From Paramoeba atlantica (Eukaryota > Protista > Discosea), in NCBI GenBank assembly GCA_977017575.1, contig CDRNVI010000234.1, positions 1 through 29,138 on the forward strand: a stretch of DNA of 29,138 bases, in the 5' to 3' direction. A program made the position numbers and the translations under genes. The notes beneath the pieces are model-generated. The model was given only the letters and a program-made list of their open reading frames with translations, had not been told where the DNA came from and did not search any database. Below, piece by piece: positions 2,900 to 23,900 of this stretch. Numbering within the stretch: position 1 is the stretch's first letter; each line of letters starts with the position of its first letter.

Positions 2900-4724
2900 T
2901 TTTTTTTTTCCACTAGATATCAGAAGATACCATTAATTTATTAAGATAAAAAACCATCATATAGATGGAAAAGTTAGTTTAGGTCTTACCAATTGGTAAC
3001 ATAAGCATAGTTAATTTTATTTAAATCAGTTAAATATTAGCATAGTTTGTTAATCTTTATCATTACTTGGAGAAAGTCTACCTTCTTTAAAGATTATATG
3101 TCTTCTTTTCTTTCTTTTTCTTTTCTTTCTATTCTTTTCATTATCCAACATACTTTCACATAACTTGTCACTTGGAATTGAAGTAGAATATACATCATGA
3201 AGATCTTTAGAGAGGGCTACAGGTGTTATCAAGGTTCCATCAGGAGAGAGAGGTTTGGGGAAGTATACCATTTAAGTTGTAATTACTAATTCTTGAAATT
3301 TCCTCAAGAATGAGGCAGAGGGAATGGAATAACTCCAATCACGTTTGAGGGGGTTGTTCAGTTTAGTCCATAAGAGAAAGTTATCAACAATCCATTCTTC
3401 TTCAGTTTTTCCAACTTGTTTAGCATGAAGGTCCCATTTGGAATTATTTAACAGCAGCCATTCCATCCATAACTGACCAACTAGCAGCAGTAGCAATAGC
3501 ATCAACATGTTTGTTAAGTTCACAGAAAACATGGATAAATTCAGCATCTTCAAATTTAGCAGCAATTGCTCTAATCTCTATCAACAGGAGGTTAAGTTCA
3601 TGGTTGCTAATATTGTGATTCTTAGGAGCTGCCTTGGTTAATATCATACAATCACCAACAATTTGGATGTGGGAACCCAAACTTCTTGCATTCTTTAATC
3701 CCAGGAGACAGCCTTTGAATTCACCAACATTATTTGTACCAAAGGGAATAGTTTCAGCACCAGCCAGGATTTCCTTTCCATTTCTGAAGATAGCATACCC
3801 AGCACCACCAAGATGAGGATCAGTAGGGCCTGAACCATCATAGAAAACTTGTAAGCCTTTAAACTTAAACTTTTCAATCTCTCTCTTCTTTTTTGCAGAG
3901 GTTGGGTCTTTACAAGGAGGTTTGGAAAGGAGTTTGTTCTTCTTTAAGACTTTGTGAAAGATATCAATAGTATACTCAGCAGATTGGGATCCTTCAACAC
4001 ACACAGTTATCCACAGTGCAAGTAAGGCATCACTCACTATTGAGGTGAAGAGGTTTGAACAATATTGAGCAGTAAGTCCACACACAAAGGAAGAGGATTC
4101 CCAAGATGGGAGTTTCAACTTGATGCAGCTATGTCCCATCTTCTCAAGATAACTTTTTGCATAAATACAGGTTTCAAGGAGGTGGGTTCAAAATTTTTTC
4201 CCTTTCTTACATAATCAACAGGTAGGAGGTTCCAAAGTAAAGTGGGAGATCTTATCCATTGTAGAAAGACTACAAATCAAGAATTTGGTAAGGTTTTGTT
4301 GGAGTTGAGGTTTAAGAGTATGAGCTAAGTTGTAGACAATGCATTTGATCTTTCCACCCTCTTGGTAGATATCTTCAAGCACAATAGGTACTTGACAAGA
4401 AAGGAAACTATAGTTTGTTTTGGTTGAACCCCCCAGAATCACTTCTTTAGAGATTTTTGAAGCAGCAAAGGAAGCATCAAGTCTCATAGCTCCAATGGTC
4501 AAGAGATTCTTGTATTCACAACTTAGAGGTTTATAAGAGATAAGAAGAGCCCAATTGAAAAGAATGAAGTGGCGAACCTGACATTTACTACCCATAAGAG
4601 GATGGCAAGTAGTTAAAATGGTGGTTTTCAGATTGACATATGCTCCCAAGGCAGCTAGAATGAGTTTCCATACTATCACAGATACAGATTGGGGGATAAG
4701 CTTAAAGTGAGCTAAGTAGCCCAA
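2900..4724 (-). mobile_element. LINE family Y, 5'-truncated (post-RT region, CCHC, RNase H, Trp-rich domain, 3' UTR, poly(A)); left arm of palindrome
   Basis: ORFs 4215-4724, 3444-4139, 3272-3565 and 3050-3271 join into one decayed frame: TC*LCKKGKNFEPHLLETC (CX2CX8HX4C), VFYDGSG..TNNVGEFKG..IVGDC..NKHVDAIA (RNase H). AATAAA and T-run at 2900-2909. Confidence 0.92.
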
Positions 4725-4729
4725 TCCTT

Positions 4730-6430
4730 CAATCTGTATCTGTGATAGTATGGAAACTCATTTGAGCTGCCTTGGGAGCATATGCCAATCTAAAAACCAC
4801 CATTCTAACTGCTTGCCATCCTCTTATGGGTAGTAAATGTCAGGTTCACCACTTTATCCTCTTCAATTGGGCTCTTCTTATCTCTTGTAAACCTCTAAGT
4901 TGTGAATACAAGAATCCCTTGACCATTGGAGCTATGAGACTTGATGCTTCCTTTGCTGCTTCAAAAATCTCTAAAGAAGTGATTTTGGGGGGTCCAACCA
5001 AAACAAACTATAGTTCCCTTTCTTGTTAAGTACCTATTGTGCTTGAAGATATCTACCAAGAGGGTGGAAAGATCAAATGCATTGTTTACAACTTAGCTCA
5101 TACTCTTAAACCTCAGCTCCAATGGAACCTTTCTTTTTAACACTAGACTTTATTAGGTGATGGCCTAACCCAAAGCCACTAATTTTTTAAGGTAACTCTA
5201 ATGGAACCTTACCAAATTCTTGATTCATGGTCTCTCTACAATGGATAAGATTTCTCACTTTACTTTGGAACCTTCTACCTGTTGATTACATAAGAAAGAA
5301 AAAGAATCTTGAACCTACCTCCTTGAAACTTATATTCATACTAAAAGTTACCTTGAGAAGATGGGATAAAGCTGAAAAAAGTTGAAACTTCCATCTTGGG
5401 AATCTTCTACCTCTGTGTGTGGATTTACTGCTTAATACTGCCAAACCTCTTCACCTCAATAGTGAGTGCTGCCTTACTTGCACTGTGGATAATTATATGT
5501 GCTGAAGAGTCCCAATCAGCTGAATATACTATTGATATCTTCCACAAAGTTTTAAAGAAGAACAAGCTCCTTCTGAAACCTCCTCATAAAGATCTAACCT
5601 CTGCAAAGAAGAAGAGAGAGATTGAAAAGTTCAAGTTTTAAAGACTTACAAGTTTTCTATGATGGCTCAAGCTGTACTGATTCTCACCTTAGTGGTGCTG
5701 GCTATACTATTTAAAAATGAAAAGGAAATCCTGGCTGGTGTTAAAACTATTCCCTTTGGTACAAATAACATTGGTGAATTCAAAGGCTATCTCTTGGGAT
5801 TAAAGAGTGCAAAAGGTTTGGGTTCCCACATCCAAATTGTTGGTAATTGTATAATATTAACTAAGGCAGCTCCTAAGAATCACAATATTAGTAACCATAA
5901 ACTTAACCTCTTGTTGATTGAGATTAGAGCAACTGCTGCTAGGTTTGAAAATACTGAATTTATCCATGTTTTTTGTAAACTTAACAAATGTATTTACTAT
6001 TGCTACAACTTCTAGTTGGTCAGTTATAGATGGAATAGCTGCTGTTAATGATCTCAAATGGAACCTTCATACTAAACAAGTTGGAAAAACTAAAGAAGAA
6101 TGGATTGTTAACAACTCTTTCTTATGGATTAAACTGAACAACCTTCTTGAGCATGATTGGAGTTATTCCATTCCTTCTTCCTCACTCTTGAGAAAATTTC
6201 AAGGTTTAGTGATTACAACTTAAGTGATATACTTTTCTAAACCTCTAACCTTTAAAGAAGGTCAACTTCCTTCAAGTGATGATAAAGATTAATTAACTAT
6301 TCTAATAATTAACTGATTTAAATGTAATTAATTATATCTATATTACCAATTGGTAAGACCTAAACTCTATATGATGGTTTTTTATTTTAATAAATTAATG
6401 GCATCTTTTGATATCTAGTAAAAAAAAAAA
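4730..6430 (+). mobile_element. LINE family Y, inverted copy; right arm of palindrome
   Basis: Reverse complement of 2900-4691 with mostly transition differences, a SINE-B fragment at 5131-5193 and a deletion near 6250. Ends AATAAA (6389-6394) plus A-run 6420-6430. Confidence 0.92.
5131..5193 (-). mobile_element. SINE-B, 5'-truncated (3' 63 bp)
   Basis: Matches the SINE-B 3' end. 16-bp TSD agctccaatggaacct (5115-5130) / aactctaatggaacct (5194-5209). Absent from the left Y arm. Confidence 0.9.
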
Positions 6431-9419: not shown

Positions 9420-11621
9420 TGGATAGTGAATCATTTGCTCAAGTTGTAAAAAAAAAGTGAAAGAAAGAAAAGACCTCTTGAAACCAAGGAAGGCTTTCCA
9501 GCCTCCAAAGGTTTCAGCAATGTGTTACACAAGATCGATCAGAACAATGTTAGACTATACCAAGGTTTAATCATGTGCCTGAACTCAAAAACTGTTGTTG
9601 GAGCCAAGTCAAGACCAACAAAGTTAGTGGGATCACTGGATTTTAGACCAGGACTTCCCAACTTCAATGAGGTTATCAAAGCAATTGAAAATGTGACTTC
9701 TCTTAAAGGGAAGATTTTTGTGAACATCAAGCAGGGCCATTTTGTGATCTCAGCGCTCAAGAACATGGATGCTGCCAGTGTAGAAAAAGAGTTTTTGAGC
9801 AAAGGTGACAAATTGGTGAAAAAACTCAAGAAATCCTTTGTCTGGAGGAACAATGAGGATGCAAAATTGTGGGGGCTCAAAATCAGGGTTCCCTTTGAAG
9901 CCAAGGGTGTGGAGTGGATCCAGAATCTTTTTGCTGGCTCAAATTCTCTTCTGAGACATAACTTGAAGAAAGTAGTTCAAATAGCCCAGAATTGTATTAT
10001 TTTGGTTTACACCCAAATTCCCATTAACTTTGTCCATCTCATTGCCCACACCAAGGGGTGGTTGGGGATTAGTGATACTCAAGCTTGAGTTAGGACCCCA
10101 GCGAGGCCCTTTGATAAAGTGGTGAAATGCCCCACTTGCCAAATTAACCATCCTGCTTGTTTGGATTGTTTATTTGAAATTTTACAAAAAAAGGATCTAA
10201 GTGAAGTTGGCAATATGATGAGAACAGAAATATACTTGATCAACACCTGCGACCCCAAAGGAGTTAAGATAAGAAATCAAGCTGCTAGAGATGGTGTGCA
10301 ATTTAACTTCATCTTGCCTGAAGGAGTCCCCTCATCCTGTACCCCCCTCAGTAATACTGGTGGGTCTATGGTGGTGGGCCCTGAGAGAATAGATCAAACT
10401 TCCCCCAAGTCACAAGCTTCTAAGCCTTCTGAAGATCTCTCCCCCATTGGTGTTAAAAAAGATGGCTTAAATTTACCTGCACGTAATTCTGGTGGCCAAG
10501 GGTTGGTGTCTCATTTGCCTAATGTTATTCCTGCTGAACCTACCCCTCTGAAGGGCCCCCCTCCTGTGAAGAAGAGCCATGAAGCCATACCCAACAACTT
10601 CAAAGTACCTTCTTCCACAACTAAGGGATCAGCTGTCCAAAGGAGTTCCTCTGTGGGTCCAGTCAAGCATGATGCTGCAGCTCTGATTAAGACAAGTTCA
10701 TTTTCTCCCATCAGGACCAAACCCTTTTCTAAAATTAAAACGATAAATGGGATCAGCAAACAAGTTAGTGGATTCTCAGTGCCCCCCCTATTGCCAGCCC
10801 AGTGATCACAAGCTCAACCAAAAAAGAAGGGTACCCAGACATTGGTGAACACATGTTCCAACCCAGTAGTCTCTTCCTTTAAGTCTACTTCTTTACATCC
10901 AAAAGAGACTGTGGGCAAGTCAAGAAATTGTGCTGATTCTGTGATCCAAAAGAAGGAGAACAGAAGAAGCCAACCTGTTTCTGACCCTGCTCCTATCTTC
11001 ATCAATGAAGAAAACTTACTGTTTGAAAATGGATTGGTGGAGGAACCTAACAATAGAAGGGAGGTGAAATCAATGTTCAAGAAATTGAACCTGAACATCA
11101 AATGGACAAGTGTAACTGAGGATTTCAGAAGAGTTTATGAGGGGTTGGAGAATGGCTCAATTTTCCCAAAGGATAGGAGATTAAGGCATCAAGCTTTCTA
11201 TTTGGTTGAGTACCTTGTGAAGACAGGATGCACTAAGAGGAAGAAGGGTGGATCAGAAGAGGTGATTAATGTTAGAGTAGGGTGGGAGAAAGGAAAGAAT
11301 GAGAGTGAAGAGGAAAAAGGAAAAATATCACAAAAGAAAAGAAAAATCGCACAAGAAAAGGAGAGTGGGGAAAGAAAGTTGGTGAATTTTCCAAATGAGG
11401 AAGGGGTGGGTGTTGTTCATCCACTTATAGAAAAATCCAAGGAAAGAAGTGGTGGTGTCCAAGACAGTGTCCCCTTTTCCTTTTTGTTTGAAGGGTCAGA
11501 TATGAGAGTGGAAGGAGAAGAGGAGGAAGAGGGGGATGCTATGGAGATTGAAATAAACAAGGAGTTTGCCAGAACAACCCAAGCAAGGAGAGAGAGTGAG
11601 GGAGGGAAGTCAGTCATTTAA
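9420..11621 (+). pseudogene. LINE X ORF1 (~700 codons; start uncertain)
   Basis: Track ORFs 9522-10088, 10119-10805 and 10842-11621 are in one frame, separated by single TGA codons. SFAQVV motif near 9431 joins via a frameshift in the A-run at 9448-9456. Zinc knuckle CPTCQINHPACLDC at 10128-10169. P/S-rich then K/E-rich C-terminal half. Confidence 0.8.
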
Positions 11622-12568: not shown

Positions 12569-15500
12569 GTTATTTCTTGGAACATGAATGGGATTCAAAA
12601 TTTCGAAAAATTGAGAACCCTTCAGAAGATGGCTGGGAGTTGTCAGCCTCTTTTCATTTTAATTCAAGAATCTCACTCTGATTTTGAATGTGACCTCAAT
12701 CTCATCAGGAACCAATTGAGGAAGTATATCTGGTTGAGAGACAACTCCTCTGGAAAGAGGAGGGGTCTGCTCATTGGAGTTAGGTGGATGGAGGGGGTGA
12801 AAGAGATCTCTCCCTGTTTCTTTAACCAGACCATGAGTGGATTATTTGGTGTTCATGTGACTATTGGATCGACAAACTATTCTGTCCTGAATATATACCA
12901 TCACCCTGACCTCAAAGTAGCCACCATCTTGCAGGAGGCCACTTGATTCTTTGGCCAGAACCCCAGGAGCATAAATATCTTTGGGGGTGATTTCAATTGG
13001 GATGTGAAGGAAAAACAGATGGGGGAAATTGAAAAGTGTTGTGCTTCTCTCCATATGTTATGCTTGAAATGGGATGAACCCACCCATTATAAAGGAAGGT
13101 GTATTGACCATATCTTCTTCTTGTCCAAGGCTCCATTAAAACATTTGTTTATCAATGCCATCCTGTCCAGCTTTAAAGATCATGCACTGCTGATTGGAGG
13201 ATCCTCATTTAAGGAATGGAAGATTCGGGCGAATAAGAAATCCATCCCTAAGTATTTGATTAATGACCATGGGTTCATCAACACTCTTATTGAGAGGATG
13301 AGTACCTTCTTCAAGGGTGATGATTCCAATGAGTTTTTGACCAGATTTAAGACCACAGCTTGGGAATTAGTTCCCTACTGGAGAGAAAGAAACACTGAGG
13401 CAGCATTGTTCAGAGAACTGTGGAAGATCCACTCTCTTGTAAGATCCCTTCACAATTCTCACATTCTTAGGAAATCTACTGTCCAGAGGCCATACTCTTC
13501 CCTTGAAATGGGTCTGTTGGACCAGGCCTCCCTTGGTTGGAAGGGTCTGAAGGAAGGGAAGTTGTGGAGGAGAGGAATAATCCCTAGAATGATTTCTGCA
13601 GTGCTCAAGAAGATTGAATGTATTGAAGGACAGTTGGGGATCTTTATTAACAGTCACCCTGTGAGGCCTAAAGTGAGATCATCCCCAAGGGTTAAAGGAA
13701 TTGTTGTGGATGGGGTCATTTCCAGAGATAATGGTGTGGTCCAGAAAGCAATTAAAGAATTTTGAGGGAATCTTTTGGGCTCAGTGAGGTCATACAACAA
13801 GGACTCTCTCCAGAAGCTGATTGAAAACCATAAACCTCGGTTTCTTAAGGTTGATTACCATGTTGTTAATGGGGCCAAGGTTGATAAACTGCTGCAACAG
13901 TGCAATAATTCAAGTGCTGGCCCAGATGGTATCCCCTTTGCTCTCTACAGAGTGACAAGTGAACAACTGTGTGATATGTGGTGTGAACTTATCCAAAGAG
14001 CTGGGGAATCAATGGATTTCCTTGAGTCATTTGGGGAGAGTCAATACATGATGGGTTTATGGAAGCAGTGGCAGAGGGCAAGGACATGACCATCCTCCAA
14101 ACTGATTTCTGTAAGGCCTATGATTATGTTAACTGTGAAGCCCTTATGGAGTTGCTGATTGGATTGAATGCTCCACCCCAAGTCCTTGAAGTTGTATTTA
14201 AAGTTCTGCAAGAGTCAGATACATGGCTCCCAACTGTAGGATCGAATGATAAGACACAGAAGGAAGCCATCAAGAGCCGGACTGGTGTGTGACAAGGCTG
14301 CTCCATTTCACCTCTTTTGTTCATTATTCTTTTTGATGTTTTGTTGGTTAGTTTGAACAATGGGGGTGACCTTGAGAAGCTTGCTGGGTTCATGGATGAC
14401 TTAGCCCTTCTCCTTCACAGAGTCCAATCCATAAATTCCTTGACCTCAATTTTCCAAAAATATGAACAAGGAACCAAAGCCAAACTCAACTACAACAAAT
14501 GCTTTGTATTGTCAACTGAAAAATTCTCTCCTGTGGGCCCTTGGGCTGAAATGCCTTCAGCTAATTATTTGGGAGAGGAGACTGTGTACTTGGGAGTTAC
14601 AATTTCTTGAAGAATGAACCCAACTAAAGACTGGGAAGGGGTGATCAAGAAAATGCGGAAGGTTGGAACAACAATTAAGTAAAGGAAAGGCAGCTTCAAG
14701 GAGAGAGTCTGGATGATCAATACTTACCTTATTCCTTGTATGGGTTATTTGGCAAGATTTAAGCTTATCTTGAAAGTTGTCTCCTTGAAGATGTGGAAGG
14801 CCATTCATTCAGCCTTAGGCACATATGCAAATCTAAAGTCCTGTGTAATAACCTCCCTTCATCCCCCTTTCTTTGAAAAACCCCAAGTTAGACACTCTAT
14901 TCTGTTTAACTGGGCTCTGCTGATATCAAGGAAACCTCTCCAAGATCATTATAGGAATCCATTGTCTATTGGGGCCATGAGGATTGATGCTTTGGAAGCT
15001 AGTGGTGCTATCTCAGAACAAGTGAGGATGGGCTCCAAAACCAAGAGATCCTTCTCTCTCCTCTCTTAGAACATTTCTGTGGGAGTGGAGAATTTCTATG
15101 TGGGGGATGGATGCTTGAAATGTGTGATCTATAATTTGTCTCTTCCACAAAGACCCCAGATTAAGCAGAACCTTCTGAAGTTCTTTTTGAGGGGTCTTCC
15201 AACTGTGGATAAGATTGTCCATTTTACATCTGTGAGTCCACTTTGTCGGCTGTGTAGGAAAGCCAAAGAGTCAAGGGTGCATCTCCTTGAAGGATATCTG
15301 AAAGCTAAGGTGATTTTGAAAACTATTGGGAGGAAATGCTTTGTTTTAAAGATTCCTGGGTAGGAGAGTGCTGACTTTATGTGTGGATTTACGAACCAGT
15401 ATCTAAAGAAGGCTGAAGCATCTGCAGTGAGTGCAACCTTATTGAGCTTGTGGATCACTGTATGTGCAGAAGGATTGAAGTTCCCAAGCTTTGCTGTTAA

Positions 15501-16017
15501 AATTTTTGATGAAATTGCTAAGACAAACAAGATGATCCCTAAACAGACAAAAAGAAAGGCTCCCCCCAAAGGTAAAAGAGAAGTGAAACAACCAAAGTTC
15601 AAGTACCCTGCCTTGCAAGTGTTTTATGATGGCTCTGGGCATGTAGATCCCCACATCAGGGGATCTGGGTATGTGATTATTAAGGAAGGTTTGAAGGTTG
15701 GAGGTGGATTTGAAACAATCCCATTAAGCTCAAATAATTTGGGTGAGTTTTCAGGATGCTTAGCTGGTCTACAACAAGTTATTGGTTTTGGGCAACATGT
15801 AGAGATGGTGGGAGATTGTAAAATTCTGACTGAGGCAGCACCTAAGATGAAATCAATTGATAATTTTGAGCTCAATGAGATCCTATCTGAGATCAGAAAT
15901 ATTGCTGAAAGTAAATTTGCCAAAGTGGAGTACACTCATGTGTATTGCAAATTCAACAAGAGGTCAGATGCAATTGCAATAGAGAGGAGTATGAGCAAGC
16001 AAGGAACCATTGGTTGA
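12569..16017 (+). pseudogene. LINE X ORF2: APE endonuclease - reverse transcriptase - CCHC - RNase H
   Basis: APE: ISWNMNG, IQESH, LNIYH, GGDFNW, EPTH..IDHIF, KDH. RT: SAGPDGIP, TDFCKAYDYV, GV*QGCSISPLLF, FMDDL (14389-14400), YLGV. CRLCRKAKESRVHLLEGY (last Cys mutated; Cys in X2). RNase H: FYDGSG, SNNLGEF, VGDC, NKRSDAIA. Seven in-frame stops and one frameshift at an RT deletion near 14045. Confidence 0.93.
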
Positions 16018-16273
16018 AGAGAGTAATGAGACCTTCCATTGTAAGGAAGATTATTAGGCCTATTAAAGCTGTTGAGAAGAAAAGAATTTTGAAAGAGATT
16101 CAAATGAGAAATAGAAAGAAACATTAGAGCTTTTGGCTACTAAGTTGGCACTGAAGTGGGTTGATTCTACTTGATTATAATAATTTAATTTAAGTGTATT
16201 CTTAGGTGTTTAGATTACACTTCATTTCAATAAATGGCATCTCTAATGTCTAAAATTTAAAAAAAAAAAAAAA

Positions 16274-16531: not shown

Positions 16532-19528
16532 TCAAACATAGCTAAACTTAAGAAAAAACCAAAACAATTATCAATTGTGAAGTGGTTGGAGTTTGAGGAA
16601 GAAAAGAGTAGGCAGGTGAAGGAAAGAAGGAAAGAAAAGAAAGAGAAAGAAAGAAAGAAAAAAGTTAAGGGCAAATCATGGAAAAGATTGGCAGTGTATC
16701 ACAAAGGAAACCAACTAAGTAAGTTTATTTTTTTTATCAACAAACAAAAAGAGTATTCATATGAGACAATAAATATAACAAGTGTGGAATTAACAAGAAA
16801 TAAAATAGAATGAAAGACAAAAACACATAAGAAAAAGGATGTGGTGGAGAGATTAAATCACAGATAAATGTTACAGAACATAGAATTAATTAACATAAAG
16901 ATTATATAAAATAGACAAATAAGATGGTGTGAAAATATTAAGAGAATAACTTGAATTCAGAGTGAGAACTGGGTGGGAAGAGCTCAGATGAGAGAGACAG
17001 GAATACATGCAGAATCAAAATAGTCTGTACAGTCTTACAAATATTCATCAGGGATATTCACACAACAGGGGAGCACAGTGGTGTACAAAGAGAAACAGAT
17101 TAATTTACATAACATGGAATCAGTTTACACCAGAATTCTGACACATCCTTCCAAATGAATATGTTTCATATAAATCAGAAGAAGGAATTTCACAACACAT
17201 CAGAAATCAAGAACAATTAAAGCAAAGCAGCAAAACAAATGGAATTTACATTTAGCACAGCAAATCAAGATGAGGTGAACAGACAGAGACCTATCATTGA
17301 ACCAAATATCAAGCCATTAAGGAAATCAGAATGAATCACAAAATCACAAAAACAAATATCAGTTGAATAGAATGGAAAAACATAAGGAATTGGTGCAGAA
17401 GCAATTAATAATTCAAAACATATTACTTTGAAACAAAAGAGGGATCAACATGAGAGCACAAGAGATAATCAGAGAACTTAAGGTATGGACATGGAGAACA
17501 AGACAGAAAAATTTAATTCAGAAATTCAAAAATAATATAACCCAGGAAAAGAGAAATCAATCCAACAAAAACAGCAGGAAATAGGAAGAGAGGGATTTGT
17601 GTTCACTATTGGAGACACAGGTGGTGCATTGAATCTTTAGAAATGCTATGTTCACTCATCATTGAGCAAGGATTGGAAGGAAGAAAGAATAAGTGTTCAA
17701 TAGGAATCACTATTGCATAGTTCCTCTAGATATGCTACATTTACTCATCATTAAGAAAGGAAGGTGCTGAAGATGTTGAAAAGAAGAATCTTTCAAAGAA
17801 AAGCAAAACAAGTCATCATAAGATGAACCAGTAAGATCAAAAGTAGAAAATCAAAATGTTTTCAATAGAGATAAAGAAATCAAAAGTCCAGTAGAAATTA
17901 TTAAAGTGTTATAAGCTTCAGAGATAATTGGGAATAGGTGAGAAGGACATTGGACAGAAAGCAACAGGAATGGAGCACAACAGCAACAAAAAAGATAAAA
18001 AAGATCATCTAGAATAGTGTTGAAAACATGGTTCAGAGGCAAAGCATTCCAGGTATGCATTTCCAAAATTCAGGGGATGAATTTTCAAAGATAAATCGCA
18101 TATCATATATATAGAAACAAATATATTATTATACAAAGAATAAATGCTGATCAAATCAACAAATGTTACAATTGCATTGAGATTTTGAGAAGAGAGGTGA
18201 GAAAAACATGAGCTGAAAGAAGAACATTAAAGAAAAAATATCATAGGGCTAGTGAAAATCTATTGCAAGGGTGAGAAAAACAAAAACTCAGAGAATCAGA
18301 GAAAATAAAACTCAAAACTCACTTGAAAAAACAAAAACAAGGTAATGGAGTTATAAAAGAACAAAGAGGGGACATGAGAACTCCCTTTGAAGGTAACAGG
18401 TGTTTCAAAAGCAAAGTAATGTCAAAAAGCATTGTTTAAGGAATTGCAAAGATAAAAGCAATCATCAAATTGCAGGTAGAATAGAAAAAAAATGGGATAA
18501 CAATCTCCAAAAATGATAATAACATCGAAACAGAGGAAGAAAGAACAATATTTACAATCAACCATAAAACAAAAGAGAATTGGAAAGCAAAAACCAAATC
18601 AAAAGATTAAATTGCACAACAATAATTTGACAAGAATAAACTATAGGGAATAATGAAGGAAATCAAATAATACCAAAATATTTTTAAGTGAAGCCAAGAA
18701 ATTAGTTACAAGTCACACAAACACTTCTTTCCAATTTGATATTTTGATCTCATCACAATTAAGGCATTTCAAAACAAGAGAGAGTATTAACCATCAAATC
18801 ATAAAACTAAATCAATAGAGGAAATTCAAAATCAACTTATTAAAGACTAAAAAAAGACTTAATTCCAATAAATCAACCAATAATTAGAATAAAATGTAAA
18901 TGGTGCAAGATGCTCAATGGAACTTACTGAAAATAAAACCATTACAAATCAAATTCAAGAATCAGCATCATTACCAGAGAATAAACAAAAACATAAGATT
19001 ATAACAGAAGGAAAAGCAAATCAAGATTTCTCAAAAAAAAAAGAAACTTAGAACAGAGAATATCAATGATAAGAAAGAAGCATCAGCAATTGAATCAACT
19101 TCAAAACAAACAAATCAAATTAGAGAGGTCAAAACTTGAGGGAAAGTACAGTAATTAAAATCAAAACAGCTTCAGAGGTGGTACATCTGAAATGACACAA
19201 ATACAATTTTTTCATAGAATACCCTTCCAACACCAAAATGGGTTTCAAAATTCAAGTAGGAGTATCCAAGAGAGGAATCCAAGTGAAAATAAAGTCCAGA
19301 ATCAAAATCACAAAAGGTAAGAGGAAGGTATAAATTTGATAATTTCAAAGCAAAAAAGGAAATCAGGAAAATTTCCATCATCAACTAAAAACAAAAGAAC
19401 AAGAAAAATCATCCTGAGGCATCAATTCAAGAATAACAAATTCAAAATGATATTGTTACAAGAAAAATAAGAAGATGGAATCAATTATTTCTTCAATAAA
19501 ATCAACACAGGGATAAATTCAATCAGTT
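16532..19528 (+). repeat. A-rich, decayed coding-like sequence; 18005-19528 is repeat V copy 1
   Basis: Strong A/purine skew with K/E/Q/N-rich broken frames. 18005-19528 is the reverse complement of about 27620-29138. No recognisable domain. Confidence 0.65.
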
Positions 19529-19537
19529 AAAAAAAAA

Positions 19538-21730
19538 TTTTTTTTTAATTTAAATATCAAAAATATCATTTATTGAAATGAAGTGTAATCTAGATATTTA
19601 AGAATATACTTAAATTAAATTATTATAGTCAAGTAAGATTAATTCACTTTAATACTAACTTAGTAGCCAAAAGTTCTAATGTTTCTTTCTATTTCTCATT
19701 CAAATCTCTTTTAAAATTCTTTTCTTTTCATCAACTTTAATAAATTTAATAATCTTCCTTTTTATAGAAAGTCTTATTACACTTTTCAACTAGTAGTTCC
19801 TTGCTTGTTCATACTCTTTTCTCCACTTTTGGTTTTCTTTCTCAACAAAACTTTTTAACATTTCATCAAATGCAACTCTTTTAGGAAACCACTTAATAAT
19901 ATTATTTAACTTTCTTCACAAAAAAGCTTCAATTTAAATCCAATGGTTTCATCACCCATTTTCATAATTTAGAATTCTTAATAATCCATTCCTCATTGGT
20001 TGTTGTTAGTTGCTTCAATCTTGGATCTTAGTTTTTATCAAATATAGTTTCCATTTCATCCTCTTCAAAGTGACTTGTTGCTGTTATAATCACATCTGAT
20101 CTTTTGTTAAATTTGTAATACACATGAATATACTTTATTTTGGCAAATTTACTTTTAATAATATTTCTAATCTTAGATAAGATCTCATTGAACTCAAAAT
20201 TATCAATTCATTTTAGATGCTGCCTCAATTAAAATTTTACAATTTCCCACTATTTTTACATGTTATCCAAAACCAATAACTTATTGTAAACCAGTTAAGT
20301 ATCTTGAAAACTCATTCAAGTTATTTGAGCTTAATGGAATTGTTTTAAATCTACCTCCAACTTTCAAACCTTCCTTAATAATCACACATTCAAATTCTCC
20401 AATGCAGAAATTTACATACTTAAAGCTATCATAAAACACTTGTAAGGTAGAGTATTTGAACTTTAGTTGTTTCACTTCTCTTTTACCTTTGGAGGAAGCC
20501 TTCTTTATAGTCTAAAGTTTGAGGATCATTTTGTTTGTCTTAGCAATTTCATCAAAAATTTTAATAATAAAGCTTGAGAACTTAGATTCTTCTGCACATA
20601 CAATAATCCATAAGCTCAATAGAGTTATACTCACTGCAGATGCTTTAGCCTTTTTTAAATATTAGTTTGTGAATTCACACACAAAGTTAGCACTTTTCCA
20701 CCTAGGAATCTTTAAAACAAAGCATTTCTTTTTAATAGTTTTCAAAATCATCTTAGCTTTCAAACATTCTTTGAGAAGGTGCATCTTTGACTTTTTGGCT
20801 TTTCTACACAGTTGACAAAGTAAACTCACAAATGTGAAATGGACAATCTTATCCACAGTTAGAAGGCCCCTCAAGAAGAACTTCAGAAGATTTTGCTTAA
20901 TCTGGAGTCTTTGTGGAAGAGATAAATTATAGATCATACATTTCAAGCACCCATCCTTCACATAGAAATTCTTTACTCTTACAAAAATGTTTCAAAATAG
21001 AAAAAAGAAAGATTTCTTGATTTTGGAGCTCATCTTTACTTGTTCTAAGATAACCCTATTAGCTTCTAAAGCATCAATCTTTATAGCTTCAATGAACAAT
21101 GGATTCTTATAATAATCTTGGAGAGGCTTTCTTGATACTAGTAGAGCCCAGTTAAACAAAATAGGATGTTTAACTTGGGGTTTTTCAAAAAACAAGAGAC
21201 AAAGAGAAGTCATTACATAGGACTTTAGATTTACATATGCACCTAAGGTTGAATGAATAGCTTTCCACATCTTTGAGGAGATAGCTTTTGAAATAAGCTT
21301 AAATCTTGTTAAATAATCTATACAAGGAATAAAGTAAGTATTAATCATCTAAACTCTTTCATTGAAGCTGCCTTTCTTTTGCTTAATTGCTGTTCCAACC
21401 TTTTGTATTTTCTTGATCATCCCTTCTCAATCCTTAGTTGGGTTCATTCTTCAAGAAATTATAATTTCCAAGTATACAATCTCCTCTTTCAAATAATTAG
21501 CCAAAGGCATTTCAATCCAAGGGTTTTTTTCAGTTAATAATACAAAACATTTATTATAATTGAGTTTAGCTTCAGTTCTTTGTTCATATTCTTGGAAAAT
21601 TAAGGTTAAAGAATTTATGGATTGGACCCTATGGAGGAAAAGGATTAAGTCATCCATAAACCCAATAAGCTTCTTAAAATCATCTCCATTGTTCAAACTA
21701 ACCAACAAAACATCAAAAAGGATAATAATA
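19538..21730 (-). mobile_element. LINE family X copy 2, 5'-truncated, heavily decayed
   Basis: Colinear with X1 from about 14320 (FMDDL at 21649-21660) to the 3' end. T-run 19538-19546. Keeps about 255 bp (19827-20083) that X1 has deleted. Differences from X1 are dominated by G-to-A and C-to-T. Confidence 0.92.
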
Positions 21731-21747
21731 TTAATATTAATATTAAT

Positions 21748-21917
21748 ATTCTTTGTTTTTTAGTAAACAGGGCAAAAAATAACCTGTTCTGTTTTTCATA
21801 TTCAAATGAATAGGAAGAAAAAATAATATTTTTAATATTTTCCTCTTTGAGATTTGAACCTGCAACCTTAAATTGAAGCAATAGCTGTTTTACCAATTAA
21901 GCCATCATACTACAATT
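21748..21917 (-). mobile_element. SINE-B fragment (head plus half of core, 3' end missing)
   Basis: A and B boxes present. Breaks at agaat into an (ATTAAT)n junction. No TSD found. Confidence 0.85.
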
Positions 21918-22554
21918 GTAGGGTTATTAATTAGGTATTCAGGAATTCTTTTCTTCCAAGAGTTGATCTTCCACTCTTTTACACTGGTCCCTTCAATCAT
22001 TACAATATGATCTTTAAAACCAAATAAGATTCCATTTATAAACAAATGATCTTCAGGAGCCTTCAAGAAAAGGAAAATATAATCAATACACTGCCCCTGA
22101 AAATGGATGGGTTTTGACTAGTTGAGGCAAGACAAATTCATATCAGAAAGGTGTTCAATTAATTTCTAGCAATTGGTTTTGTTTAAATCTCAATTGAGAT
22201 TCCTAACCAAAATATTTTTGCTTTAGGAGAAAAATCAGGAAGATTCTTCCATTAGGTGTTCCAGTTTCAAACCAGGGTGGTGATAAACATTGAAGATTAA
22301 GAATTTTTGATTTTGGATGAAAACTTTTAATCCAAATGATTTACCTTCATTTTTCTCAAAAAAGAAGAGAATGAGATCTTTCAATCCTTTCACATGTCTA
22401 ATTCCAATCATAAGACTACATTTCCTCTCTGAGAAGGAATCACAAAACCAAATGTACTTCCTCAAGTAGTTCTTAAGATGATTAAAATCATTTTCAGATG
22501 TTGCATAGGTTTCCTGGAGGAAGATGTATTGAGGCCAAGAGTTAACTGTTTTTT

Positions 22555-23446
22555 GGTTTTGAAACCATCCCTCTTGGGTCCAACAATATTGGTGAATTTA
22601 CAGGCTGTTTGAAAGGAATGCAATGTGCCAGATCAATGACGAATGAGATTGAAGTTGTCGGGGATTGTATGATTCTCACCAAGGCTGCACCCAAAACCCA
22701 TGCCATCAAAAACTATGCCTTGAATGAACTACTTTGTGAAATCCGTAAGTTAGCAATGTGCTTTGATGAGATAGAATTCACCCATGTACCCCAAGAGCTT
22801 AACAAGCGAGCTGATGCAATTGCAACTGCTGCAAGTTGGTCTAAAGAGGATGGAACATGTGCTGTGAATGACCATCATTGGGATCCAAGATCACAACATA
22901 TTGCAGAAACCAGTGAAGAGTGGATTATTTTGAATTCAACCCTGTGGAACTGGATCAATTCCCCCCTCACCCATGACTGGACCTTCCCCATCCCCCCAGG
23001 GAATTTTATAAGGAAATTCCAAGAAAACACGGTGACAACCCTCCATGTTTTGTTTCTGGCCCAAACTGCTCTTGAGAATGCTCTAATTCTCCCTGTAATA
23101 ATTACTAAAGATATCCAAGGATGGTTCCATCAGTCCCAAGAGAGCAATCTGGTGAGGAGCTTTATTGAGGAAGATTTTCGAAGGAATGTAATTAACTTCA
23201 TAGAAACCTCCAAACCGAATTCACTCCCTGGTTTTAGAAGGCGAACAATCAAACGCAGACCCCTTAGTGAGAACTAAAGTTGGTAAAGAAACTCCAATGC
23301 ATCCCATGCTGAAGAGATCTTTGGATCTAACTCTTAATTTATCTTCCCTCCCCCCCCCCTTTCTTCCCCCCTCTTTTCCATCCTAGAGATGGTTTTTTAA
23401 CTCTAATAAATGGCACCTAGTGTCTGAACCTTAAAAAAAAAAAAAA
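22555..23446 (+). mobile_element. LINE family Z, 5'-truncated (RNase H C-terminal part, Trp-rich domain, 3' UTR, poly(A))
   Basis: Open frame to 23277: GFETIPLGSNNIGEFTGC..VVGDC..HVPQELNKRADAIA..WDPRS..EEWII. CpGs retained. AATAAA 23405-23410, poly(A). Exact 18-bp TSD aagagttaactgtttttt (22537-22554, 23447-23464). Confidence 0.92.
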
Positions 23447-23460
23447 AAGAGTTAACTGTT

Positions 23461-23900
23461 TTTTTTTTTTTTTTTTTTTTTTTTTTCTTTTTGAAGCAAA
23501 CTTTATTCAATTAGTAGTTTTTAATTTAAACCATTTAAATTACATTAAATTATATTTGTTTTTAATCTTTAATGAGAAGTAAAGTTTTTAAACTTTAACT
23601 TAGTTTAGTTAGTCTTTATACTGAACTTTAGAACTTCTACAAGTTCAGGCTGGAGAATGTACATCAAAAGAGAGAATAATTCAAAACTCTTTTCAAAGGA
23701 ATTTATTTTCAACTTTTTAGCAAATAAGGCTGAAATGTAATCTGTTTTGATTTTCACACTTTTTCAAAAGCTTTTCACTTCAATCAAATCATTTTACAGC
23801 ACCAAAAAAATTTTCTAAAATATTAAAAAACTGGGATTTGAACTTGCCCCCCCAAGGTTGAATATAGTTGAATTTATAACTAAACTACAGGCACTAACCC
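23461..23900 (-). mobile_element. SINE-A, full length
   Basis: Head gggttagtgcctgTAGTTTAGTT..AGTTCAAATCC, long T-run tail. 14-bp TSD aagagttaactgtt (23447-23460) / aagagctagctatt (23903-23916). Confidence 0.88.

Follow-up and report, generated by a model that had tools for sequence, protein, structure and literature searches.

The stretch of about 150 amino acids that follows the RNase H in the LINE families X, Y and Z is, in our view, very probably a real domain of ORF2, maintained by selection and not carrying any name so far. We have analyzed it in the window (the whole stretch of DNA under study, 29,138 nucleotides) and in its relatives, using throughout natural sequences and not consensus or repaired ones. 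The original prediction had described a Trp-rich block of 36 residues as the conserved unit. The block is real. It has been shown to open a genuine protein module, of which it is the N-terminal part and with which ORF2 ends; the full conserved region is larger, about 115 residues plus a basic end.

The module begins with a conserved linker, to which is joined an acidic core of about 115 residues, rich in Trp and predicted to mix helix and strand; next come a charged helix and, about 25 residues past this helix, the short basic motif P..R[RK]II. The Trp block reads WDPR ... TSEEWI ... LW.W ... P ... DWSFP, and the second half of the tail continues with F.RKF...VITT..V.FP.Q ... DI..WFPE, after which comes the acidic-to-charged helix. 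The core has a pI of 4.4–5.3 and 5–9 Trp per 115 residues, and the basic ends have a pI of 10–12 in all six lineages measured. The alignment of the tails contains no conserved Cys or His column (there are 0–2 Cys per core, at varying positions), indicating that the tail is neither a zinc knuckle nor a zinc finger. In Z, the RNase H was recognized by Pfam RVT_3 (E 2.5e-09) at residues 3–74 of the ORF located at 22609–23277, corresponding to positions 51–122 of the 123 of the profile; its N-terminal half sits upstream, behind a stop or a frameshift as judged from the translation. The stop codon, a 3' UTR, an AATAAA and a poly(A) come directly after the Z tail, which shows that ORF2 truly ends with this tail. 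About 12 bases past this poly(A) there is a run of about 30 T (window 23433–23495), which has the look of a second element's tail in the opposite orientation, or else of a T-rich site into which an insertion took place. The coordinates of all these features are collected in Table 1.

Table 1. Features of the C-terminal module, of its copies in the window and of the 3' ends (positions refer to the window unless another sequence is given).
Feature	Position	Strand	Basis
Z RNase H (archaeal-type), C-terminal half	22615..22833	+	Pfam RVT_3
Z linker SWS.EDG..AV.D, from RNase H to Trp block	22834..22878	+	conservation
Z Trp block, 36 aa	22879-22986	+	translation
Z Trp-rich acidic core, pI ~5, 7 Trp	22879..23175	+	alignment, profile matches, pN/pS
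Z charged helix and basic end (P.FRRRTIKRRP), pI 12.0; ORF2 stop 23275-23277	23176..23277	+	
Z 3' UTR with AATAAA (23405-23410), short hairpin and poly(A) (23433-23448)	23278..23448	+	
Y block	3436-3329	-	translation
Y tail in two pieces (3448-3275; 3271-3053), in-frame stop 3274-3272	3053..3448	-	translation
Y', N-terminal half of the tail, in an inverted duplicate of Y	6014..6220	+	translation
X2 block	20030-19923	-	translation
X2 decayed tail, stops at three Trp codons	19908..20030	-	translation and comparison with intact X
X1 junction of the 364-bp deletion (= L004 8201-8564)	15980..15981	+	blastn of L004 7600-9100 vs window
AATAAA-hairpin ends	23405-23432, 16228-16262, 2930-2970 (-); L002 2644-2663; L005 1308-1345		
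ALLSLW.TVCAEG.KS stretch	15400-15470 and aligned parts of P0001, P0021, P0065		

Our translations of the block in Z, Y and X2 reproduced exactly, and at the same coordinates, the peptides quoted in the original prediction, and a recount gave the same 13 invariant positions out of 36 when the three stops of X2 are taken as Trp. These stops (codons TAA, TGA and TGA) sit at Trp positions and can be read as Trp because of the codons themselves and because 320 of the 368 differences (87%) between X2 and the intact X copy L004 are G>A or C>T. The distance from RNase H had to be corrected: the block had been placed about 15 residues past the last RNase H Asp, and its actual distance from that catalytic Asp is 22 residues. 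The similarity of Y and Z beyond the block and their basic ends were both borne out by the translations. The Y tail is frameshifted against its RNase H ORF near 3445. X2, compared with the intact X copy, has a deletion of 106 bp in the C-terminal half of the tail. The claim that X1 lacks the domain was also correct, and the cause is a clean deletion that shifts the frame and takes out the tail core, with the 3' UTR left in place. The window also holds a fourth copy, Y', which had not been listed. On the other hand, the description of three LINE families carrying the block holds for X, Y and Z alike, but overstates their independence. They are related families of a single clade (57% mean identity in RNase H over seven lineages that include these three, and the same 3' end), which means one inherited domain and not three independent occurrences.

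Comparing X2 with L004 (window 19500–22000, minus strand), about 35% of all C positions have changed, equally in the CA, CC and CT contexts, with 50% in the few CG sites, and the GC content is about 0.29 in X2 vs. 0.42 in X1. This pattern would correspond either to a strong AT-directed mutation pressure or to a context-free deamination of old copies.

Relatives were gathered by word searches, first using the Z ORF as query and afterwards the alignment of RNase H plus tail. Open copies were recovered for all three families and for further lineages. Intact tails were found for X in P0016, P0061 and P0062 and for the Y family in P0159 and P0065, and P0161 is a single ORF of 946 aa with RT, zf-RVT, RVT_3 and the tail in frame. 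At least eight diverged lineages (counting P0011, P0021, P0044, P0052 and P0049) carry the tail, with 35–54% identity in it. Profile matches reach E 1e-50, and the similarity is far beyond chance. One of these lineages, P0052 (L006 1730–2986), has kept the Trp block; its RNase H no longer has the last helix and the catalytic Asp located there, and its C-terminus bears a long extra extension, basic and of low complexity. P0052 could represent a decayed copy or else a subfamily of its own.

The mean pairwise identity between lineages was 57% for RNase H, 55% for the linker, 42% for the N-terminal half of the tail, 28% for its C-terminal half and 20% for the end, with 33% for the segment that precedes RNase H. 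In the core, a Nei-Gojobori count gave pN values of 0.28–0.45 vs. pS values of 0.64–0.80, with dN/dS of 0.18–0.42 and synonymous sites that were saturated. Since pN is well below pS between lineages, the protein sequence of the tail is under purifying selection. It is thus extremely improbable that the tail is non-functional, that is, a chance frame or a read-through into the 3' UTR that is conserved only through the youth of the copies. Most of the copies in the window are certainly decayed, as such a view would expect, but lineages with saturated synonymous divergence retain the protein sequence, and the ORF is open in several lineages that come from different data sets. The pN/pS result appears to refute this explanation.

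A known domain, or simply the normal C-terminal helices of this type of RNase H, is also a very improbable identity for the tail. The candidates were the CCHC found after RNase H in the I, Tad1, R1 and ingi groups, the C2H2 chaperone of L1Tc, the RNase H1 hybrid-binding domain, a chromodomain and the integrase HHCC. The tail proved distinct from the RNase H fold, as had been suggested: the RVT_3 profile ends (position 122 of 123) before the tail begins, and Foldseek aligned only the RNase H part of the model. This part matched nearly whole chains of solved RNases H (4e19, 3hst, 3u3g and 2ehg) over about 125–140 columns, with TM scores by target of 0.64–0.74 and E values of 1e-7 to 1e-5, leaving the tail uncovered. 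Nor did the tail match any described family in Pfam, in the PDB sequences or among 1.84 billion proteins. Nine tail members were run through hmmscan against Pfam with E up to 10. None had a match above threshold; the four matches below it were scattered, each limited to one or two members, and neither the RNase H1 hybrid-binding domain nor the chromodomain nor the integrase HHCC was among those listed. The profile search of the PDB sequences, also with E up to 10, had no match. What speaks for a known domain is that integrase H2C2 clusters were the top named matches in a protein-atlas feature search, being the best named for two tails (0.83–0.86). However, the best scores of that search (0.83–0.88) were at the level of shuffled sequences and those of H2C2 fell within that chance range, so this lead, which has neither the His and Cys ligands nor an hmmscan match, was dropped. 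A chromodomain-like reading of the W-F-P-E segment found no support in Pfam or in fold searches either. Together with the missing conserved Cys or His, and with an RNase H profile and solved structures that stop before the tail, these results leave the identity with a known domain largely refuted at the sequence level. Scans of the window with Rfam and for tRNAs found nothing.

The structure predictions were of low quality. AlphaFold2 gave a mean pLDDT of 55.7 for RNase H plus tail, with 40–60 in the tail part, and a pLDDT of 61.5 with a pTM of 0.27 for the tail alone. The two low-confidence models agree in secondary structure only: in both, the linker is a hairpin, EEWI...LW.W a helix and DI..WF a short one, and there are two to four short strands as well as a long helix of charged residues. 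Searches with the low-confidence tail model gave a best E of 2.0 with Foldseek against the PDB, a best Z of 3.8 with VIA wide (on the long helix only) and a TM of at most 0.32 in the ESM Atlas. Given that the models are poor, the absence of fold matches does not show a new fold.

To look for the motif outside LINEs we searched 1.84 billion representative proteins with the profile. There were 24 matches at E <= 0.001, all of them short (<= 418 aa), and those read or traced were linked to RNase H or were tail fragments of LINEs. Stand-alone or cellular proteins or fusions carrying the motif, the search for which had been proposed originally, were not found among these proteins. Seven representative matches (five among the 24) were traced to their source together with P0159, a member of the P0065 cluster, and the traced sequences came from four data sets: ENA ERZ24900291, ENA ERZ27284154, one JGI metagenome and one NCBI contig of 435 bp. 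Scans of JGI metagenome contigs with the alignment and with P0011 gave no matches. In the source organism, public contigs placed on the region indicate that the Z family is very abundant, with a coverage that climbs steeply from about 22,560, as expected of 5'-truncated LINE copies. Many of the differences of the window copy are common to nearly all other copies, and therefore the Z of the window is slightly decayed. One contig of 677 nt covers 22558–23234; the run it comes from may be RNA, which is not proof of expression. A run bearing the label of another organism (B) contains a contig of 232 nt identical to 23167–23397 except for one inserted base, and the source organism may be present in the sample of that run.

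The elements that carry the tail can be placed by their architecture. The near-intact X copy L004 has an ORF1 followed by an ORF2 with the order APE, RT, zf-RVT (CCHC), RVT_3 and tail. Pfam recognized in it Exo_endo_phos (a weak E of 0.024) and RVT_1 (E 1.4e-08), and the relative P0160 has both PF03372 and PF00078. Matches to zf-RVT ahead of RVT_3 had E values of 2.3e-04 and 1.5e-03, both below the Pfam cut-off, and the C..C...H....C pattern is visible in the translations. RVT_3 was above the cut-off in all lineages, and the conserved RNase H columns D, E, D and D, assigned by eye and not against a structure, are found in the alignment. A phmmer search of the RT piece against the PDB gave human L1 ORF2p as the best match (E 2.5e-10), with R2 at 3.8e-06, an indirect hint of a place in the L1 clade. 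By their order of domains the elements are L1-like (APE-RT-CCHC-archaeal-type RNase H). Two other regions of these elements lacked a Pfam match. One is the ORF1 of X (window 9522–11621, plus strand; L004 1977–4252), of about 750 aa when intact. The other is located in the approximately 100 residues between CCHC and RNase H, that hold the strongly conserved ALLSLW.TVCAEG.KS, another unnamed conserved segment of ORF2.

The 3' ends are also shared. An end made of AATAAA, a short hairpin and poly(A) was found in Z, X, Y and P0044, the last being a distant lineage from another data set. The contig of P0021 breaks off within the hairpin, and P0052 ends in AATAAA and poly(A) with a doubtful hairpin. 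The stems vary in a compensating way (TGGCAC/GTGTC, TGGCATC/GATGTC and TGACACC/GGTGCC).

As for the role of the tail, the original prediction had named three possibilities: a substrate-binding handle for RNase H, binding of the 3' hairpin and tethering to the target site. Our preferred reading, which we hold only tentatively, is that of an accessory to RNase H, with a basic arm that extends to the hybrid or to the 3' hairpin of the template. In E. coli-type and human RNase H1 a basic protrusion holds the hybrid, and archaeal-type RNase H lacks it; the low-confidence model likewise predicts no helix at the site where it would be. A tail providing a basic arm to an RNase H without protrusion is what leads us to this reading, and the linker, as conserved as RNase H itself, suggests that the core probably packs on RNase H as one unit. 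The tail would assist the protrusion-less RNase H during target-primed reverse transcription. Its folded acidic core would bring the basic arm at the C-terminus onto the RNA:DNA hybrid or, alternatively, onto the conserved template end with its AATAAA, hairpin and poly(A); the arm could also serve nuclear import. Against this reading stands the low confidence of both structure models. The acidity of the core (unusual for a nucleic-acid binder) argues against direct binding of nucleic acids by the core itself, and in plants and oomycetes L1 elements that have this type of RNase H are described as tail-less, so that this RNase H needs no tail (PMC5348765). It is because of the acidic core and of related L1 elements that work without a tail that we rate the mechanism low. 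That the hairpin is shared is due to common ancestry and does not tie it to the tail. The 3' UTR of X1 is 96% identical to that of the intact copy despite the loss of the core, which weighs on neither side, since the deletion may have happened before or after the insertion. In a further reading, which seems to us unlikely, the tail has a new fold and lets an L1-like LINE recognize its own 3' end in a "stringent" manner. Here the tail, tethered to RNase H, would read the AATAAA-hairpin before the poly(A) and pick its own RNA for target-primed reverse transcription; if true, it would be a template-recognition module undescribed for L1-type elements.

Among the other roles, the tail could conceivably be a module for protein-protein tethering, a suggestion that we regard with some doubt. 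The acidic Trp-rich core would bind the own ORF1 protein or a host factor (chromatin, replication or import machinery), steering the RNP to its target or assembling it, and the basic end would be a nuclear localisation signal. The aromatic-rich acidic core without conserved Cys or His is consistent with it, as are the K/R clusters at the very end and an acidic helix that weakly resembles an acidic transactivation motif (Pfam TAD2, E 0.016–0.06, below threshold); against these points, no interaction domain was matched in Pfam or in the fold searches with the low-confidence tail model, and there is no known partner. A purely structural cap, stabilising RNase H or the folded ORF2 without a separate activity, is a rather unlikely role. 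Conservation is best in the linker and the N-terminal half of the tail and falls toward the C-terminus, as a cap would have it, and a comparison is offered by the RNase HI of S. tokodaii, the C-terminal anchor of which stabilises the enzyme (PDB 3aly is this protein with a C-terminal deletion). But a tail of about 150 residues, which has a predicted secondary structure of its own as well as a conserved basic motif, goes far beyond a cap, and related RNase H domains fold without a tail.

Why some LINEs encode their own RNase H has been stated as an open question (PMC5348765). A clade that pairs RNase H with a conserved and selected partner domain is a way into this question. The tail also adds an unnamed protein family to the modules of LINE ORF2 and serves as the hallmark of a distinctive clade of L1-like elements in a protist lineage that is poorly sampled, with a value limited for now by the restriction of the domain to few data sets.

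Known systems resemble these elements only in part. The RNase H is like the archaeal-type RNases HI of Halobacterium (4e19), the N-domain of M. tuberculosis Rv2228c (3hst), LC11 (3u3g) and S. tokodaii (2ehg), and all of these chains lack the tail. The hybrid-binding domain of RNase H1 (Pfam Cauli_VI), of about 45 aa, is also a small separate module with conserved aromatics joined to RNase H, and it provides the model for the idea of a substrate handle, but it is N-terminal and basic, and our tail has no Pfam match. In L1Tc/ingi of Trypanosoma cruzi the C-terminal domain has C2H2 zinc fingers, basic stretches and nucleic-acid chaperone activity. It follows RNase H as the last part of a LINE protein and has basic stretches, which makes it a possible functional analogue; however, the tail described here has no zinc-finger Cys or His, an acidic Trp-rich core, no sequence similarity to it and a different LINE architecture around it. 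It also differs from the CCHC of the I, Tad1, LOA, R1 and ingi clades in the absence of zinc ligands after RNase H. The closest arrangement is that of plant Ta11-type and oomycete L1 elements, which have the same order of APE, RT, CCHC and archaeal-type RNase H and match zf-RVT and RVT_3, with the CCHC upstream of RNase H (PMC5348765). There, the archaeal-type RNase H is described as the C-terminal end of ORF2 (PMC5348765), whereas here about 150 conserved residues lie beyond it and the host belongs to a protist data set and is neither plant nor oomycete. By published descriptions, the tail is apparently what sets these elements apart from the known L1 with archaeal-type RNase H.
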